A stretch of 64,000 nucleotides of DNA from Gekko japonicus (taxonomy: Eukaryota): positions 434,001 to 498,000 of the forward strand of contig NW_015162475.1 in NCBI RefSeq assembly GCF_001447785.1. Reading direction: 5' to 3'. Positions 20,819-54,650 of this stretch are shown piece by piece. A program made the translations under genes and the position numbers. The notes beneath the pieces were generated by a model. The model did no database searches, was not told where the DNA came from, and saw only the letters and a program-made list of their open reading frames with translations. How positions within the stretch are numbered: position 1 is the first letter of the stretch; each line of letters starts with the position of its first letter.

Positions 20819-22053
20819 TCTCTCATATATATTTGTCACTTGAGGTGGCAAGATTCGATACGCGGCAAAATCAATACGCTCCGTGAAGTGCCACTCAAAA
20901 ATGGGTCCCTGGCTACTGGCTGCGTTCCCTTCCTCCCGCCCACAAACGTGCCGCGCAGCCTCTCGCCCTCAGTGTTCTGGGAGTTGATGGAGGAGCCGGA
21001 TGCTCGCTGACGCTCCACAGAGGTTGCTGGTGGGCATAGGGGATGCCAATCCAGGTGGGGCGAAAACCCTGGCGGAGGGCGGCCGATGGCCCCGTGTCAT
21101 CCTCTGTGTAGGGAGCTGAAGACAGCAGCGGTGCTCTTTTGCTCCTCTGTCTCCCTCATGGAGCACTCTGAGGAGGAGGAGATGGTCGTCTCTTCCCTCC
21201 TGGCCGAGCCGCTCATGCAGCCCCCATCCGCTCCCACAAGTGCTCCGTGCTGCGGGGTGACAACGCAGGGCCCCGCCAGACACGCAAGTGGCCAAGGACC
21301 AAGTGGTGGCTGGGTGGCTGCGGCTGCTACGCCAGGAGTGAGTGCCTCCGCTGCCTGACCTGTTACTGCAAACTGCTGGGAGGCCTCCAGGAGGGCCAGG
21401 TGGTGTGGGCTATGTCCTTCCCCGCCACACCGCCCGTCGGTGGCCTGTCTTCGCCCCCCCCAGCTTCTAAAGCCGCTGGGAGGGCCGGGTGGCCTGCAGC
21501 CTCTCCGTCGGCCCGTCTTCGCCCCCCCCATCCAGAGAAGCTGGGAGGGTCAAGTGGCATCTGGCCTCTCTGTCCCCGGCGCGCTGCACATCACCGTCCC
21601 ACCTCCCCTCCGTTGCTTCTGCAGCCGCTGGGAGGCCCAGATGGCACATGGCCTCTCCATCACTGGTGCACCACACATTGCCAGCCCGGCTCCCCCCCGC
21701 TTCTACAGCATCCAGGAGGGCCAGCTGCCGTGTGCCCTGTCCTTCACCAGCACGCAGGCTGTCTTCGGCCCCCCTCTCCGGAGCTGCTGGGATGGCCGGG
21801 TGGCGTGCGGCCTCTCCTTTGCCACCACGACACCTGTTTTTGCCCCCCACACACACACTTCTGCACCCGCTGGGAGGGCTGGGTGGCATGTGCTCTCTCC
21901 TGTGCCGCCTGTCGCCGGCCTCTCTTCCCCCCCCCGCCTTTTAGATAGCTATCTGTGGGGCGGATGCGGGCCACGGTTGCAGGCGGGAGCACTCTCCCAG
22001 ACCCTCTCCCTAGAGCTCATTGCATTCCTTTCCACAATGGACCTGATCACTAG
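20819..22053 (+). mobile_element. Probable non-autonomous Helitron with internal GC-rich minisatellite
   Basis: 5' A|TCTCTCATATATA. The 3' end has a hairpin (CATTG...CAATG) ~10 nt before CTAG|T. No TIR or TSD. Confidence 0.6.
21375..21940 (+). repeat. Degenerate GC-rich minisatellite, ~7 units of 65-95 bp
   Basis: Recurrent core GCTGGGAGGGCCGGGTGGC..GCCTCTCC...CCCCCC near 21375, 21471, 21540, 21624, 21711, 21783 and 21868. Confidence 0.8.
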
Positions 22054-22925
22054 TAATTTTATAAAACAGGCCTTATTTCAATGTAATATAGTGTGTGTGT
22101 GTGGGGGGGGATACTCCCAAACGTTAACCTAGTAAGTCTACACATCTTGGAAGCTTCATAATAAACCATGGTCAGATATTTACTGTAGCATAAAGGCATT
22201 TAAGAACTAACAAGCAAAAGTTGAAAATTTGATGCTTAAGTAGTCAGATTTGATGTATGAAATCAAATTCAAGTTGAACGATCTGCACTATTTGCACACT
22301 TGATTCAGCTTGCAGAAATTGAGGCCTGGTTGTATTGGATATTGTGAGAAGCACACCAGTGCTTAAAAAAAAACGTCAGCCTTGTTTGTGTCTCCCCCTC
22401 CTCTTCACACCTAAATGCATGATATAATGCCACTGTGCTGAGAGCTTTTCTGGCAAATTTCATACTTTGCATTTGGAAGGACAGAGGATGAATAAGGGGG
22501 GAAAGATATGGGACAGTAGCCATGTGCCATAATATCTAATTCTGGCCTGAGTGACTTAATATTCAGCAAATAGTTTGTATCATAAAAAAATGTGTACCAA
22601 GACTAAATTAAACACTCATTTTAATTATAAAAGTGATACTTAACATAAACTATGCAAAGTTTTCATTTTGTTTGAAGTATTGTGTGGCTCTTTTCTGAAA
22701 GTTATATGAAAACGACTATAACCAAGAATGTTTCTGTCCCTTAAGAGTTACCTTATAACCAAAGCAGAAATAATACACTCGAAGAGAATTCTCCCTGAAT
22801 TATTTTAGTAAAACCATTTTACTGCACTGTGGCACGTAAAAAAGACCAACAATAAACCTTTCTTCAAATACATTAGAAGTAGGAAACTGTTATTAAATAA
22901 CAGTTCAAGGCAATCTGGCTAACAC

Positions 22926-23306
22926 TTAGAACAAATAAAAGGAAGTTCTTCTTCACCCAAAGACTGATTAACACATGGAATTTACTGCCACAGGAGGTGG
23001 TGGCGGCTACAAGCATAGACAGCTTCAAGAGGGAACTGGATAAACATATGGAGCAGAGGTCCATCAGTGGCTATTAGCCACAAGGTATAGATAGGAACTC
23101 ACAGGCTGAGGCAGGTGATGCACTGTATTCTTGGTGCTTGGGGGGGGGGGCAACAGTGGGAGGGAAACAGTGGGAGGGCTTCTAGTGTCCTGGTCCCACT
23201 GATGGACCTCCTGATGGCACCTGGTATTTTTGGCCACTGTGTGACAGAGTGTTGGACTAGATGGGCCATTGGCCTGATCCAACATTGGCTTCTCTTATGT
23301 TCTCTT
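22926..23306 (+). mobile_element. CR1 3' end with (TTCTCTTATG)n tail
   Basis: Near-identical to 48555-48856 and to the reverse complement of 1-190. The tail is interrupted by BovB. Confidence 0.9.
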
Positions 23307-23653
23307 GACTCTTGAGAGTCCCTTGGACTGCAAGAAGATCAAATCAGTCAGTCCTAAAAGTAATCAACCCTGACTGTTCCCTGGAGGGCCAGATAATGAA
23401 ACTGAAGCTCAAATACTTTGGCCACCAAATGAGAAGGGAGCACTCATTGGAGAAGACCCTGATGCTGGGAAAGATTGAAGGTCAAAGACGACGGGATGGC
23501 AAAGGATGAGATGGTTAGACAGTGTCATAGATGCAACGAACATGAAATTGAGCCAGCTTCAGAGGACGGCGGAAGACAGGAAGGCCTGGCGTGATCTGGT
23601 TCATGGGGTCGCAAAGAGTCAGACTCGACTGTGCGACTGAACAACAACAACAA
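23307..23653 (+). mobile_element. BovB (RTE LINE) 3' fragment
   Basis: RVPWTARRSNQS..LKLKYFGH..SLEKTLMLGK, (CAA)n tail, 10-bp TSD ATGTTCTCTT (23297-23306, 23654-23663). Confidence 0.95.
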
Positions 23654-24101
23654 ATGTTCTCTTATGCAACAAACTGCATCACTGGAAAAGTTTATCATGG
23701 CCTAAACTAAACTACCTAATCCGCTATACTCAGAGGACAACATATATATGTATGTATGTTACTGGATTCAAAGGACCTTGTGGGTGGGGTCTTCTCCCCT
23801 ACTTCCCACTGCAGCCTCTTGTGACCCCTGAAAAAGGTGTTCCTAAAGAGAACTTGATGCAGCCTAAGGCATACAGCCAGAAGAGAAGATCAGAAACTTG
23901 CCTACCCTCACGGCTTGTGCATGGGGTTATCTGGATCTTTAATGAAAGAACAGGCAGTACCAAAAAAACTCCTAACCAAAAAACTGCTAACAGCCTGTTT
24001 AATACTGAAGTACCTGGTGCCAAATAGAAGGCAAAGACTGTGATGTAGTTCATATCTAACATAATAATACTATTTATAGTCTTGAGCTGCCTTGTCTAGA
24101 G

Positions 24102-24430: not shown

Positions 24431-27132
24431 CTAAGGGTAAATAGAACATTTTGTTTTTTAAAAGTGTTTAAAAGAAGAAGAACACAAAAAGGTCAAATCA
24501 TCCCCCAAAATGTATTATAAACAAAAGCTAAATGCTGAAAAAGTTATACTTCAAGCTGGTGCAGACAGGTTGTCTCCTTGAGCAATTACACTGTGTGATT
24601 CAAGCAGTATGCCCCCCCCAATCCCTTCCTGGATCAAAAGACTGTTGTGTGCTATCAGCATCTTCCTGCTTGCAATAACATGGAGTGCACTAAATTGATC
24701 ACACATTATTTCCCTAAAACACTGACAATATTGCCATTGCAAGTAATATAGGTTGTCTCTTTGAGTTCCATAGAATTAGAGGTAGGACATCCATGTCCAG
24801 GTCACAGCACCTAAAGTCTGCATGTGATCAACAGTTTCCCCATGGAGAAAATATTCCTACATATGGAAAACTAGGATGTCAAGGAGAAGTTCTCCCTGAC
24901 ATAATGATATCTGTATGGTTGTTGGGTTTTTTAATTTCAGGAACCATTATGCAATCTCTACCTGCAGCCAGGAGTTCTTCAGTCTAGACACAAGTTTACT
25001 ACCTCTGTATTTAGACCAAAGAAAGTATAGAATTGTGCATCTGTCAGCTATTTATTGATTTAAATCACTTTATCCCACTCCTCCTCCAAGGAGCTCATGG
25101 TGGCCTCCATGACTCTCTCCCCTCTTCCAGTTTATCTTCCCAACAACCCTGTGAGATAGGTTGGGGAAAGGAAGAGAATATGGACATGTGAGAAGCTCCA
25201 CACATGCACAGGCCATTTACCCATCAAAAAGGAGAATGAGAAGCAGCGATAACCTATGGCTACTATGTAGTAGTAAATCCGATGCATGCAAAGAGCTTGG
25301 AGATATACAGAGGATTTCTTCTCAAGGCAAACGAAAAATCAATATGAGGAATGGGAATAATCCATGTATGTGCAGAGCATTTCTTTTCACAGTTAAAAGT
25401 GTCATGCCTTCTCTTTCTGCATTTAGGAAGGCGTGTAAAAGAGACGAGAATTTCATAAACTTGTGACCAACATTTGAACTTTATTCAGAAAGCCCTTTTG
25501 TCAAGAGAAGCCTATCATTGGATTACTCCGAGGATTTGGTCTCAGGCAGCACTGAGAGCAATTTGCCATCTGAGCAGAGGCAGCAATCGACAGGGTAGCT
25601 GGGTGACTGCTGATAATATATGCACAATTACTATGCCTCAGGATAGCATGGAACACCTTTTAAACCTTTGGCTGTACGAAATACATGTTGCTATATTTAG
25701 TTGACAAACAACATTATCAATTCCTATACTACACATTTCATACAGCCAGCTTCATACAAGTCTCTGTTACAAATGCAATGTATTTTTTTAAAAGGAAAAA
25801 AAAACACATTCCTTTAATCTTATATAATCCTTGTGTCTCAGATAAGATCAAATTTTATGAACATAATAAGCTATTAAAATTTACAAAAATAACTCCTTTA
25901 GACAGTATTTTGTAACACTGAAATTGAGTAAAATGTCACGTACTCCATTAGCACGTATAAGATTTCTCCGTATAAGTAAAAAATTCTCAAAGTTTATTTT
26001 GAAAACTGAAATCCCAATGGTTACATATAGCCTTGAAAATTAATACCTTTTATACCAAACTATTTCATTAGGCATCAGCACAACTTTCCAGTTGAGGTAA
26101 CTTAATCGCTGTCAAAAAATGTCGCCTTGCCCTTAGGCACCTCATGCTATTGGCTGGAAGGAAGCACGACATCCTGACTTTGGTTTTGATCCCAGGTCTG
26201 GTAAGAGCTGCTTGTCAACTGACACTGTCAAAATGCACCAGTATTACAAGAGTCATTTTTCCATTGTCTTACTTTCCTTACACACAATTTATATAATTCT
26301 TTTTAAAAAAAAAAAAATACAGGAAATACATGGACAGATTAAGAGACTTGAAAAGGAAAGCAGAAAATTAACTGAAAACTGCTTATTTTTCACCCCAATC
26401 CAAATATTTCAGTATTCTTCAGCACACTGTGCTAGCAACGTCATTCCTTTCTGAAGGAGACAATGAGCCATAATTAAGGTCCTTAACTCCCTTGCCCTCC
26501 TTGTATTAATCTGCCCCAATTTTAACTGATGGCCAGTTCCCTCTTTCTCTTTTCCTGCTAATCCATCGATCTCAAAGACTGGTTGATATGCCCCCTTAAA
26601 ATACTGGGGAGGGGCCATCAGGGAAGTATCAACCACCATTAAAAAAAATAAAATAAAGAGATCAGCCATAAATCTTATACACAGAAGGGTATTTATTTTA
26701 TATTTGGTTTTTGGTATCCATATTAGAGTGTACAACATAGCATGTGTTCCTGCCCTAAATATCAAAAAGAATTTTTTCCCAGTAACAGCATTTAAACGTA
26801 AAGTGTGTGGATTGGTGGTTAGTTTCACTCACTCTCAACATCGCCCTCTGGTAGTCACAGGCACTGCTTTAAGCAAACTGTGTTTCTACAAATCATATGT
26901 GCCATATGCATTTTGTAGGACTGTTACCACCAAAAACAGTTTCATAGAAAATAATGTGCATATGCAACTTGACCTTACCCAGCTGTGTAACACACACAAT
27001 GTATGATCAAAGCTTTCTAATGTAGAAAAGTTGCAAAAATCTGAATGCACTGCCATAATCATGAAGTTGCAAGCTTCAAGGGTATCCTGAAGCCAATCAC
27101 TCATAAAGGAAAAATTTAGAAACAGCTATTAA

Positions 27133-27209
27133 AGGCTCATCCATTGCACTTCGGGTGTGCTGAGCCCTGCGATTTCCCCAAATGCGGGAAACTCGACTGC
27201 ATAATTTGT
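27133..27209 (+). pseudogene. RNU1: U1 snRNA internal fragment (stem-loop II, stem-loop III, Sm site)
   Basis: AGGCTCATCCATTGCACTTCGGGTGTGCTGAGCCCTGCGATTTCCCCAAATGCGGGAAACTCGACTGCATAATTTGT closely matches the middle of vertebrate U1. The 5' end and stem-loop IV are absent. Confidence 0.92.
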
Positions 27210-27215
27210 AAATAA

Positions 27216-28456
27216 TGTTAAAGTGCTGCACTCAATTTGCCAGCAAATGTGGAAAACGCAACAGTGGCCACGGGATTGGAAAAGGTCAGTATACATTCCA
27301 ATCCCAAAGAAGGGCAATGCCAAGGAATGTTCAAACTATCGCACAATTGCACTCATATCACACGCTAGCAAGGTCATGCTCAAGATCCTACAAGCTAGGC
27401 TTCAACAGTACATGGATAGAGAACTGCCAGAAGTACAAGCTGGGTTTCGAAGAGGTAGAGGAACGAGAGATCATATTGCCAACATTCGCTGGATTATGGA
27501 GAAAGCAAGAGAGTACCAGAAAAACATCTACTTCTGCTTCATTGACTATGCTAAAGCCTTTGACTGTGTGGATCACAACAAACTATGGCAGGTCCTTAAA
27601 GAGATGGGAGTACCAGACCACCTCACATGTCTCTTGAGAAACCTGTATAAGGGCCAAGAAGCAACAGTTAGAACCGGATATGGAACAACTGATTGGTTCA
27701 GCATAGGAAAAGGAGTACGACAAGGATGTATACTGTCACCTTGCTTATTTAATATATATGCAGAGTACATCATGCGAAATGCTGGCCTGGATGAATCACA
27801 AGCGGGAATTAAGATTGCTGGGGAAAAGATCAACAACCTCAGATATGCAGACGATACCACTCTAATGGCAGAAAGTGAAGAGGACCTAAAGAGCCTCTTG
27901 CTCAGAGTAAAAGAGGAGAGCGCAAAAGTGGGCTTGAAGCTCAACATCAAAAAAACTAAGATCATGGCATCCGGCCCCATCACTCCTTGGCAAATAGAAG
28001 GGGAAGCTGTGGAAGTAGTGACAGACTTCACGTTCCTGGGATCCCAGATCACCGCAGACTGTGACTGCAGCCATGAAATTAAAAGACGCCTGCTCCTTGG
28101 GAGGAAAGCGATGGCGAACCTAAACAGCATGATAAAAAGTAGAGACATCACCCTGCCAACAAAAGTCCGCATGGTCAAAGCAATGGTATTCCCAGTAGTC
28201 ATGTATGGCTGCGAGAGTTGGACTATAAGGAAGGCCGAGCGCAGAAGAATAGATTCTTTTGAACTATGGTGCTGGAGAAGACTCTTGAGAGTCCCTTGGA
28301 CTGCAAGAAGAACAAATCAGTCAATCCTCAAAGAAATCAACCCTGACTGTTCCCTGGAAGGCCAGATAATGAAACTGAAGCTCAAATACTTTGGCCACCA
28401 AATGAGAAGGGAGCACTCACTGGAGAAGACCCTGATGCTTGGAAAGATTGAAGGTC
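27216..28456 (+). mobile_element. BovB (RTE LINE) RT domain, young copy truncated at both ends
   Basis: Stop-free ORF 27223..28485: WPRDWKRSVYIPIPKKG...FIDYAKAFD...GVRQGCILSP...LRYADDTTL. Similarity ends at GAAGGTC, before the 3' UTR and (CAA)n tail seen in the 23307 copy. Confidence 0.97.
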
Positions 28457-29131
28457 GGTCAGGCTTAATCTCAGTTTCTTATTAAATCACAATACATCAC
28501 TTTCTGCACATCCTTGAATGCTTTTCACTGAAACAAAAGTAGTCAGTCCTCTTTATGGGTGTGCATGAATGTTCATTTTTCTGGGTGCGATCAAGTGAAC
28601 AAGCATGTCAATTTTATGTGGGCTCTGTCCTGTACTTTAAACATTGCTCCTTTATTACTTCTCAATGATTGTTATGCAGGAAGTGGTTCAAAATCCACAA
28701 AAATCCTACAAATAAATCACATTTCTAAAAGGAGAATGGAGAAGACCATTGCAAAAATTCTATTTTAGAGAACGAAGCAAAACCATTTCTGGGATTAATT
28801 ACCAATTTTCTTGGAAAATTTCCTGTCACTTTCAACACATATAATTCTTTTTTCAGCACAGTGAACTAAAGCTGCCGAACCCCAATAAAGTGAACTTAAA
28901 GGTTGCAGATGGATACAGCAACCTTCCCACCCAGCCCAGGTGCCTTAAATTACCCTCACCCTGGTTTTACAGGAATTTGGCATGTCATGAATTGGATCAT
29001 GTAGCTGTTGAGTCTGATTTGGCTCCCCCATGAGGCAGTGGCACAATTCGAAGTTTTGGCACCTACTAATTAGAGTAATTATTGTATTTCAACCATGACT
29101 CTACTGTATTAATGTTGTTTTTATTGATATA

Positions 29132-30995
29132 CATTATGACGGACCCCTGCTTCTTCACAGTGAGGCAGAATTTCCCAGCAAAACGCTGTTCCCCACTCTG
29201 ACTTAGCAGCCTCTTAGTAGCATATTTTAATTATAGAATTATAACGTCCTATGTGTCCCACCTTGTGATATAAAAGTTATTTGGCTTTTCCCCAGGCCAG
29301 AGATTTATTGTAACTAAGCAGGAGCCCTCTTATAAATCCTTTTGGAAATGGCACTTGACATAAAGTTCAAACAGAAAGGTTGATTTTATTGAACAGGCAT
29401 AGGGCAGGGGATGAGAAGCTGAGGTAAATTGTGTTGTTTATACAAATTTTATTATTTTGAACAGGCAACAGAGTATAATTGAAGCTTATATTCTTAGATG
29501 CTCAGTTCTTAACTGTGAGAGGTTTGTTTTTCTTGGAGATTTCTTTCAGCAACAATGTGTCCTAATAAAGTTTCATAAAACTTAGTGTCCTAGAAGTTAA
29601 TACTTTCTTCCTATATTTACATACTTCCCTTGTGAGATTATAAACTTTTCCTTTTTTAGTCTTGAGATGTTTAAGACCGTTTCCCTTTTCACACAATGAG
29701 GGGTCCCGAGACTCCCTTCTGAGTTGAACCCTCTGAATAACTGGGTAAGAAATATCCTCCTCTTTCCAGGAAATAATAATCCTTGGGTGCGTTCAGACGG
29801 GCCATTTGAGCCGGTATACATGCCGGTTAGAAACGGAGTATTTACGCGCGATCACATGGTCAACATCTGCCTCCCGTCCCCAGCCATCGCTTTCCAGCAC
29901 AAACCCCCTATAAAGTGGAGTATTTTGATACCAGGTCCCCAAGTGGTGCTTTCCTGCTTCTCCGGTTCCAGCCACATTTTCCCCCTGTGTGATCGCTCCT
30001 CCGCCAGTGTAGAGCCACTTATTGTTCCCCGCTCGAAAGCGGCCTGAGGCTTCCGCTTTTTACCCACCATTTAAAAAAAAAAAAAATTAAGCGGCGGCAA
30101 TATGCACGTGGGCAGAGCTTCGCCCCCATGTTAGTAAAACCAAAGTTTAAATGGTGCCTAGTTTTGCTGTGTAAACGAGTTCGGGATCTCACAGAGGCCA
30201 GTTTCGGGGTAAAAGTGTGAAGGGAAGTGTTCATTTAAAGTTTAAAGGGAAGCGTTACGGCAGTTGGGTTGAAGGGGAAATTGCTGTTCTGCGCACGCGC
30301 GAAAATGTTAATACTAAGGATGTCCGCCTGCGCGTATGCCCAAACTGAGAGGGAAGAAACTTGTGTGAACGGTCGGGAGCGATATGGCTGTGCAGCGATT
30401 CGGAACAAGGAGGTAAGTGTGATCGTGATTTTTCCAGCTTAAAAAAAAAGCGCCTAGGATCAGAGCAGTTTAAACCGCTCCAGCACGCCGTCTGATTGCA
30501 CCCCTTTTCTGTTTGGCTAGACTGGCAATTTTCAGCCTCCTGTCCAGTCGCTTCTGTCAAACCTAAACTCCAGTTCTGGAGAATGAATAAACGGAATTCA
30601 GTTAGGGCTGACACTTAAGACTTTAAGTTCTGATTTCTGAACTTTTCCTCAAATGTGAGGGTACACAGTAAGAACTAGGAGTTGTGTCCCTTCACTTCCC
30701 AAGTGAACTTGTCTGTTTCCCTCAGACCAACATACACACTTTTCCTGACTGGCAACGGCCAAGCCAAAGTCCAAAGGACAACTGACTCTTTTCCTTAGCA
30801 CTCAGCTGCTCTTAAAGTACTCTTCAGCTGGCAGTGGCCAATCAGAGAGAAAGGAGGGGGTGCATGCAGGCAACAGCCTGTTAACCAAAATGTGCCTCTC
30901 AGTGAAGCATTAACCCTTAATCTCCCAGCGCTCTGCTTTTGAAGCACTAAGCATCCTGCTTTTGGAGGTCAGTTCATCAAATACACTGCCCTGGC
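29132..30995 (-). mobile_element. Solo LTR interrupted by a MITE (boundaries approximate)
   Basis: Colinear blocks shared with the reverse complement of 41641-42616 (TTATGACGG, TGTCCCACC, AAATGGCACTTGA, CCAATCAG, TTAACCCTT). AATAAA on the minus strand at 29385-29390. Confidence 0.65.
29785..30503. mobile_element. CpG-rich PIF/Harbinger-type MITE nested in the LTR
   Basis: 16-bp TIRs GGGTGCGTTCAGACGG / CCGTCTGATTGCACCC (14/16). 3-bp TSD CTT (29782-29784, 30504-30506). Confidence 0.85.
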
Positions 30996-32349: not shown

Positions 32350-34240
32350 TTCGAGGCCCCTTGCACACCTTCGGTTCTGGGTTTGTATTGTTTTAGCCCA
32401 CTCAGCCTGGAGGAAGTCGACAGATTGCTCGTATCTGTGTGCCAAACCACATGCAACCTTGATCCGTGCCCTTCCTGGCTCATTAAAGCTGGCCGTGAGG
32501 GGTTTTGAGGTGCCTTCAGGGAGATTATCAACAAGTCCCTCTCTGAGGGGCAGTTCCCTGAGGCACTCAAAGAAGCGATGGTCCGCCCCCTCCTGAAAAA
32601 ACCAACCTTGGACCTGACCGAATTGGCCAACTATCGGCCGGTGTCCAATTTGCCCTATTTGGGCAAATTAATCAAGAGGGCAGTGGCGATACATCAACAG
32701 AGCTTCCTGGATGACGCTTCCATCCTAGATTCTTCTCCAGTCCGGTTTCCGCCCAGGACATGGGACGGAGACAGTGCTGGTTGCCCTTACTGACGACCTC
32801 CGGAGGCACCTGGATCGAGGTGGGGTGGCGGCACTGTTGTTGTTAGATCTGTCAGCCGCGTCGACCACCAGTTGCTGACCCACCGCCTCGCCGATGGGGG
32901 GATACAGGGGCTTGCCCTTCAATGGCTTGCCTCTTTTCTCCAGGGTTGGAGACAAAGGGTGGCGCTAGGGGAGCAGCAGTCCCGAAGACATTCGCTCGAA
33001 TGCGGTGTGCCCCAGGGGGCGGTGCTCTCCCAGATGTTGTTTAACATCTATATGCGCCCCCTTGCCCAGATTGTCTGGAGGTATGGGCTAGGGTGTCATC
33101 AATATGCAGATGACACCCAGCTCTATCTGATGTTGGGCAGCCGGTCGGACTCCAGCCCAGAAGATCTGAACCGGGCTTTGCAAGCCGTGGCTGGGTGGCT
33201 CAGACTGAGTAGGCTGAAACTGAACCCAGGAAAGACGGAGGTCCTGTGTCTGAGTCTGGGTGGTCCAGGATGGGGATCCCTCTCCCGACCTTCGGTGGGG
33301 TGCCTTTGGTGCCAGTGCCAGAGGTTAGAAGTCTGGGAGTGCTCCTGGATTCCTCCCTAACTATGAAGGCCCAGGTAGCAGCCACTGCCAGGTCGGCCTT
33401 TTACCATCTTAGGCTGATTCGGCAGTTGGTTCCCTTTCTCGACCGCGATGACCAGGCTACAGTGATCCATGTGACGGTCACCTCGAGATTAGACTACTGT
33501 AACGCTCTCTACATGGGGCTGACTTTGTTGCAAATCCGGAAGCAGCAGCTAGTGCAGAATGCTACAGCCAGGCTGTTGTTGGGTCTCCCTAGATGGGAGC
33601 ACATCCAGCCTGTGCTGAAAGCGCTGTACTGGCTGCCAATAGTGTACCAAATTCACTTCAAAGTGCTGGTTCTTACCTTTAAAGCCCTATATGGCCAGGG
33701 TCCGACATACCTGAGGGACTGGCTTTCCCCATATATACCCCAAAGAGCAATACAGTTTGGGGCACAACATCACTTAGTGATCCCAGGTCCCAGGGAGGCC
33801 TGGCTTGTTGCAACCAGGGCCAGGGCCTACTCAGTGGCAGCTCCAACTTGGTGGAATGAGCTCCCGGAGGAGATCAGGGCTCTGCAGGAACTTGTACAGT
33901 TCCGCAGGGCCTGCAAGATGGAGCTCTTCCGCCAGGCTTTCGACTAGGAACCGCCACTACTACCAACGAGGCCAGCTGATAACTGGGAACGGAGCGGCCC
34001 TATGACGATCCCGTTGTACTGGGATGGGGGCAACATCTACTGGACACCATCTTGTCTTAATTCAAGAGTAACAGCATTGAGCACTTTATGTAATCTTTGG
34101 TCATTTATTCTGTTTTATCCTGTTTTATTCGGTTTTTATATATTGGCACATGGTGCCCCTGTTTGTTAGCCGCCCTGAGCCCATTCGTGGGGAGGACGGG
34201 GTAGAAATTTAAATTAATAAAATAAAAAAATAAAAAATAA
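32350..34240 (+). mobile_element. L2 LINE, 5'-truncated (RT domain plus 3' UTR)
   Basis: Frameshifted ORF pieces TTCNLDPCPSWL, VRPLLKKPTLD...NYRPVSNLP, GVPQGAVLS..YADDTQLY, SRLDYCNALY, FKVLVLTFKAL. A-rich tail. Confidence 0.95.
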
Positions 34241-45908: not shown

Positions 45909-45939
45909 NNNNNNNNNNNNNNNNNNNNNNNNNNNNNNN
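45909..45939. other. Assembly gap (31 N)
   Basis: Run of n. Confidence 1.
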
Positions 45940-54443: not shown

Positions 54444-54650
54444 GGGGAGGATCTATAGCTCAGTGGGAGAGCATCTGCTTAGCATGCTGATGGTCCTAGG
54501 TTTAATTTCTGGCCCTTCGGTTAACGGTCTAGCGGTGAGTTATGGGAAGGACCTTTCTCTGCCTGACACCTTAGAGAGCTGCTGCCAGTCTGAGTGGACA
54601 GTACTGACCTTGATGGACCAATGGTCTGATCCACTATAAGGCAGATTTGA
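54444..54650 (+). mobile_element. tRNA(Ala)-derived SINE with CR1-type 3' end
   Basis: Head TATAGCTCAGTGGGAGAGCATCTGCTTAGCATGC...GGTTTAATTTCTGGC. Tail GATGGACCAATGGTCTGATCCA resembles the CR1 3' hairpin at ~23260-23281. Confidence 0.8.

Follow-up and report, generated by a model that had tools for sequence, protein, structure and literature searches.

We propose that the U1 snRNA fragment and the BovB segment lying side by side in the window (the whole 64-kb stretch of DNA that was analysed) are a one-off chimeric retrocopy, that is, a single cDNA made by the BovB reverse transcriptase (RT) in a template switch, and we put the probability of this reading at roughly 0.55. The unit has a three-part anatomy of U1 piece, short filler and BovB piece, in which U1 and BovB share a common orientation, the BovB piece is truncated at both of its ends and neither piece is decayed (Table 1). 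It is most likely a small RNA-LINE chimera of a known sort, here of U1 with BovB, in a degenerate and tail-less form. As it stands the copy is inert, as it lacks the 5' end of U1, a complete Sm site, stem-loop (SL) IV, the BovB endonuclease and the BovB tail.

Table 1. Coordinates in the window of the parts of the U1-BovB unit, of its surroundings and of the second BovB copy.
Feature	Position	Strand	Basis or remark
U1 snRNA fragment	27133-27209	+	Rfam RF00003 alignment, model positions 55-132
A/T filler, 6-7 nt	27210-27216	+	Resembles neither U1 nor BovB
BovB (RTE-clade LINE) RT segment, truncated at both ends	27217-28456	+	Open frame, RVT_1, relatives, second copy
Candidate 7-bp target-site duplication (TSD), left copy, TATTAAA	27127-27133	.	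Last base is the first U1 base
Candidate 7-bp TSD, right copy	28480-28486	.	Exact 7-mer, 23 nt past the BovB break
Stretch of 23 nt between BovB break and right TSD candidate	28457-28479	+	Unique in the window
Second BovB, 5'-truncated, canonical 3' end with (ACA)n tail	23307-23653		Match to the U1-linked copy
Clean 10-bp TSD of second BovB copy	23297-23306 and 23654-23663		

The presence of a genuine 77-nt piece of U1, as described in the first-pass annotation, is borne out by Infernal: cmscan of positions 26000-30000 returned RF00003 at 40.5 bits (E = 5.6e-8) as the sole U1 match there, and a scan of the whole 64-kb window returned the same single match (E = 9e-7). The score lies below the gathering score of 69.5 because the piece is a fragment and not a gene, and a full-length U1 gene is not what the match describes. 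The span reported by the program is 27112-27239, of which everything outside 27133-27209 is low-similarity padding from the global alignment, and confident U1 homology, as read from the printed cmscan alignment, amounts to the 77 nt in between. Kept within them are the loop and upper stem of SL II, the entire SL III and the beginning of the Sm site; the 5' end that pairs with the splice site is absent, as are SL I, SL IV and the bulk of the Sm site. The earlier statement that SL II and SL III are both present therefore holds for SL III, which is whole, but only in part for SL II, which is incomplete in that its four basal pairs have no 5' strand (model positions 49-52). In neither 26000-30000 nor the window did cmscan return another Rfam match that could be the rest of U1, on the downstream side of BovB, or U1 nt 1-54, on the upstream side. 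Nucleotides of U1 are numbered here in what we take to be the numbering of human U1, and model positions are the output of the tool.

At the inner junction, mismatches to the U1 consensus begin at 27210 and protein homology to BovB begins with the codon at 27217, the two preceding codons being unmatched, and the filler in between looks untemplated. With U1 ending at 27209 and BovB starting at 27217, both on the plus strand, the two pieces abut in the same orientation at the 5' truncation point of the LINE, and the co-oriented joining of U1 to a 5'-truncated BovB through a short A/T linker (27210-27215/6) is thus confirmed. Only 83 nt separate the flank-U1 from the U1-BovB junction. Twin priming is rejected on account of the shared orientation of the U1 and BovB parts. 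The one match of 27212-27231 in metagenome contigs was set aside as due to chance, the contig being an unrelated one whose sequence diverges right past the 20-mer.

The BovB segment belongs to an ORF at 27223-28485 (420 aa) with an RVT_1 match of 1.4e-40, and its frame is free of stops, as had been claimed, over 413 codons, the other two frames having 21 and 24. In a large protein search, the database of which does not hold the host's own BovB copies, the closest proteins, from Podarcis muralis, Varanus komodoensis and Bos, are 86% identical in amino acid sequence and no relative exceeds that value; no exact copy of the 420-aa or 412-aa ORF product was found in the protein collection. The joint occurrence in ruminants and squamates marks the RT as BovB, a class that we assign on the assumption that host distribution defines it. 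Several of the top RT matches come from contigs of 2-3 kb that are assigned to Staphylococcus aureus, Mycoplasmopsis arginini and Babesia ovata, and these microbe-labelled BovB matches look like contamination of microbial assemblies with cattle DNA.

By pairwise alignment the protein homology covers 27217-28455 and begins at residue 188 of 652 in a Podarcis protein (P0016) or at residue 233 of 697 in another protein (P0007), and the C-terminal 52 residues of P0016 fall past the point where BovB breaks off. The copy is thus far from a complete BovB: the match starts past the N-terminal part, and it has neither the endonuclease, nor the C-terminal 52 residues, nor a 3' tail. The open frame of 413 codons and the 96% identity with a second copy in the window mark it as young. 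The observed/expected ratio of CpG is 0.36 in the BovB piece and 0.25-0.35 in the flanks, and is uninformative as a proxy for age. A different LINE lies at 32872-33947 on the plus strand in the form of two overlapping ORFs, the first of which matches RVT_1 at 1.2e-15 and is 30% identical to the BovB RT. This second RT was considered as a cause of the truncation and rejected, as it belongs to a different LINE and is 4.4 kb away.

The 3' end of the U1-linked BovB is also truncated, which is an addition to the earlier description: the element breaks off at 28456 and unrelated sequence follows. The second BovB copy provides the measure of what has gone. Its positions 23307-23483 are 96% identical to 28280-28456 (7 differences in 177), and the U1-linked copy lacks the roughly 170 nt that come next (23484-23653), with the (ACA)n tail. 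The second copy is a textbook 5'-truncated TPRT insertion, and its tail and 10-bp TSD indicate that normal BovB retrotransposition has left copies in the window and was recently active. Directly upstream of it, 23100-23296 contains a run of G, a tandem repeat of 14 nt (23144-23178) and what resembles the last part of a squamate SINE or LINE tail, and the second copy seems to have been inserted in or beside another repeat.

For the U1-linked copy, the missing BovB tail was not found elsewhere in the 64-kb window, neither flank is repeated in the window, and no clean TSD was found around the unit. The 7-bp TSD candidate is suggestive only: of 60-nt pieces drawn at random from the window, about 1.4% contain a word like it. 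The 23 nt that precede its right-hand copy occur once in the window at up to 3 mismatches, and a comparison with both BovB copies on both strands gave just chance matches of 8-12 nt; they could be filler, the remnant of a third template or plain flank.

What argues for a single cDNA is that a real fragment of U1, the sole one in 64 kb, lies 6-7 nt from the 5' truncation of a BovB and in the same orientation. What argues against a single TPRT event is that the LINE part stops short of its own 3' end and tail, on which a stringent LINE should start TPRT, and that a clean TSD is absent. The interpretation put forward in the first-pass annotation is partly supported: a template switch fits the orientation, the abutment and the filler, and is weakened by the lack of a BovB tail and of a clean TSD.

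In the course of events that we favour, the BovB RT, while copying BovB RNA, would have halted within the RT-coding region, would then have added a few untemplated A/T bases, and would have resumed on U1, either at an internal site or, if the U1 molecule had previously been cut back to the Sm site, at its 3' end. A second halt would have followed at U1 nt 55, after which the cDNA, now composite, would have been joined to the chromosome. We infer the occurrence and direction of the template switch, as well as which form of U1 was copied and by what route the cDNA was integrated; that the switch occurred at the single-stranded Sm site is suggested by one breakpoint. The absence of the BovB tail implies either a non-canonical integration or a later deletion. 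In the first case the cDNA may have been captured at a break, or may have been started on a template other than BovB, the 23 nt then being what is left of it; in the second, a deletion may have taken the tail together with the right-hand TSD. Insertions of L1 that are independent of its endonuclease, or captured at breaks, are reportedly 3'-truncated, without a tail or clean TSDs, often accompanied by a deletion at the target, and sometimes carry extra pieces of cDNA. The BovB described here is like them in being 3'-truncated and in having no tail, and its 7-bp TSD candidate is ambiguous.

For the form of U1 that may have served as acceptor, the RT of R2 offers a comparison: in its end-to-end jumps it goes to the acceptor RNA's 3' terminus, with a small number of untemplated bases added. 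Jumping of the R2 type would imply that the U1 was already shortened at the Sm site. Human cells hold shortened forms of U1 (U1-tfs) of 118-127 nt (PMC3936765), and an RNA like these might have been the acceptor, a lead in which the lengths are not exactly coincident with the end of U1 here.

Instead of a single cDNA, the unit may have been built sequentially, which we regard as unlikely. A 5'-truncated U1 retropseudogene would have come first, BovB would have inserted at its A/T-rich Sm site with the 5' end towards U1, and a deletion would then have removed the BovB tail, the TSD and the remainder of U1. Because BovB has lost its 3' end and no clean TSD is present, a deletion or a non-canonical route is needed in any case, and by a rough estimate about one chance insertion of BovB into a U1 pseudogene could be present in a genome that has numerous BovB copies and a number of U1 pseudogenes. 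Doucet et al. (2015; PMC4476161) allow that chimeras without TSDs may be sequential. The sequence of events, however, comprises three at one spot, all of them recent because the U1 and BovB parts both look undecayed. It also leaves the co-orientation and the facing of U1 by the BovB 5' end as outcomes with a chance of one in two each, whereas template switching expects both, and the Rfam scan found no further piece of U1 downstream.

The first-pass annotation had raised the possibility that the unit is a member of an undescribed U1-headed RTE family. That there should be an amplified U1-headed family dependent on BovB or RTE, with this copy as a member, is in our judgement very unlikely, even though SINEs headed by snRNA sequence (SINEU) do exist (PMC4494074). 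The copy lacks both U1 nt 1-54 and the BovB tail that would be needed for recognition, snRNA genes are without an internal promoter (PMC4494074), and the joining point falls midway along the ORF, within an RT segment of 1.2 kb that does not resemble the body of a SINE; nor was a second copy found within the 64-kb window. A related and equally improbable idea is that the BovB/RTE RT jumps recurrently onto U1 ending at the Sm site, which could be decay or quality-control intermediates like the U1-tfs, and has thereby given rise to a squamate class of U1-BovB junctions in which the U1 end is always the same and the BovB breakpoints differ. If true, such recurrent jumping would tie snRNP surveillance to LINE activity.

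A patchwork made at the DNA level is a shade more improbable still. Repair of a break would have copied pieces of a U1 gene or pseudogene and of BovB by replication-based template switching, with no RNA intermediate, and the features that it would explain are that both pieces are internal fragments, that there is filler at the junctions and that there is neither a tail nor a clean TSD. A templated patch of 1.2 kb is long for such break repair, which counts against it. So does the collinear orientation together with a break at the LINE 5' truncation point, as these are typical of retrotransposition (Doucet et al., 2015). An assembly artefact, with the BovB halves derived from different loci or a chimeric read used in the assembly, is extremely unlikely, as one short read can span both junctions, a U1 piece of 77 nt is too short for a repeat-mediated misjoin, and two other samples of the same organism contain 0.76 and 0.69 of the words sampled from 26300-29300, fractions that are not specific to the junction.

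Reading the unit as a single-event chimera places it among structures that are already documented, and the first-pass annotation overstated its novelty, since chimeras of U6 with an RTE-clade LINE in Anolis, of U6 with L2 in platypus, and of an internally 3'-truncated sense U5 with L1 have all been published (Doucet et al., 2015). It is most readily compared with the U6/L1 chimeras (Buzdin, 2002/2003; Garcia-Perez, 2007; Doucet, 2015; Moldovan, 2019, PMC6789731), in which there is likewise a sense snRNA at the 5' truncation point of a LINE and the formation of which is ascribed to RT template switching or to prior ligation of the RNAs. In these, however, a U6 that as a rule is full length is joined through its natural 3' end to a LINE that has its own 3' end and poly(A), and the whole unit lies between TSDs. 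The present unit differs in that U1 has lost sequence from both of its ends, the partner is a tail-less BovB and the TSD is doubtful.

Closer in some respects are the U6 chimeras of Anolis, platypus and opossum (Doucet et al., 2015), as their partners are non-L1 LINEs, including RTE-clade elements in a lizard, the snRNA is often 5'-truncated and the TSD is small or absent. In Anolis the partners of U6 are L1-like, L2-like and RTE-like (RTEX-2) LINEs; in the L2 chimeras of platypus U6 is 5'-truncated in nearly all cases and TSDs are of 1-9 bp; and in opossum there are U6-RTE (RTE_Mdo) cases without a TSD. The small RNA in all of them is the Pol III transcript U6, and neither BovB as a partner nor a U1 breakpoint at the Sm site is reported in that work. 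Like the present unit, the U5/L1 and U3/L1 chimeras join an Sm-class or small nucleolar RNA internally and in sense with the LINE (PMC4476161; PMC11838501), but they are driven by L1 and have TSDs and the L1 3' end. In the sense U5/L1 chimeras the snRNA is 3'-truncated internally, and in one such case the tail and the duplication on the right were subsequently lost by deletion (Doucet et al., 2015). The human U1/L1 cases in the same study are inverted and involve twin priming, in contrast to the present unit. A survey published in 2025 adds truncated U3, U5, 5S and tRNA to the partners (PMC11838501).

Two further systems invite comparison. The crocodilian SINEU resemble the unit in that sequence derived from U1 forms the 5' side of the retroposon, and their origin has been put down, as a proposal, to template switching (PMC4494074), but they form families of many copies that share a 3' region and have poly(A), whereas here there is one observed copy and no mobilisable tail. 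For MINE in Magnaporthe, double template jumps are reported to yield tripartite chimeras (PMC2104539), and a possible three-part insert here (23 nt, BovB and U1) would similarly need two jumps; unlike in that system, no family is seen here.

Doucet et al. (2015) concluded that non-LTR retrotransposons in general are capable of template switching. If the unit is a single-event chimera, it would be one more sign that such switching is general to non-LTR RTs and that BovB was recently active here, and it adds U1 (Sm-class, made by Pol II and in sense) and BovB as a partner to the list of LINE-small RNA chimeras. Taken alone, the U1-BovB copy shows no evident function and raises no question of long standing, and wider interest would need a recurrent class with a fixed U1 end.

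Three other features of the window were recorded. A G+C-rich region at 21247-22132 has overlapping long ORFs on both strands and a 65-nt tandem repeat (21442-21574), with no Pfam match. A run of 31 N at 45909-45939 is either an assembly gap or masked sequence. Lastly, 54449-54504 on the plus strand gives a weak tRNA-like match (RF00005, 29.5 bits, E = 0.043) and is possibly the head of a tRNA-derived SINE.
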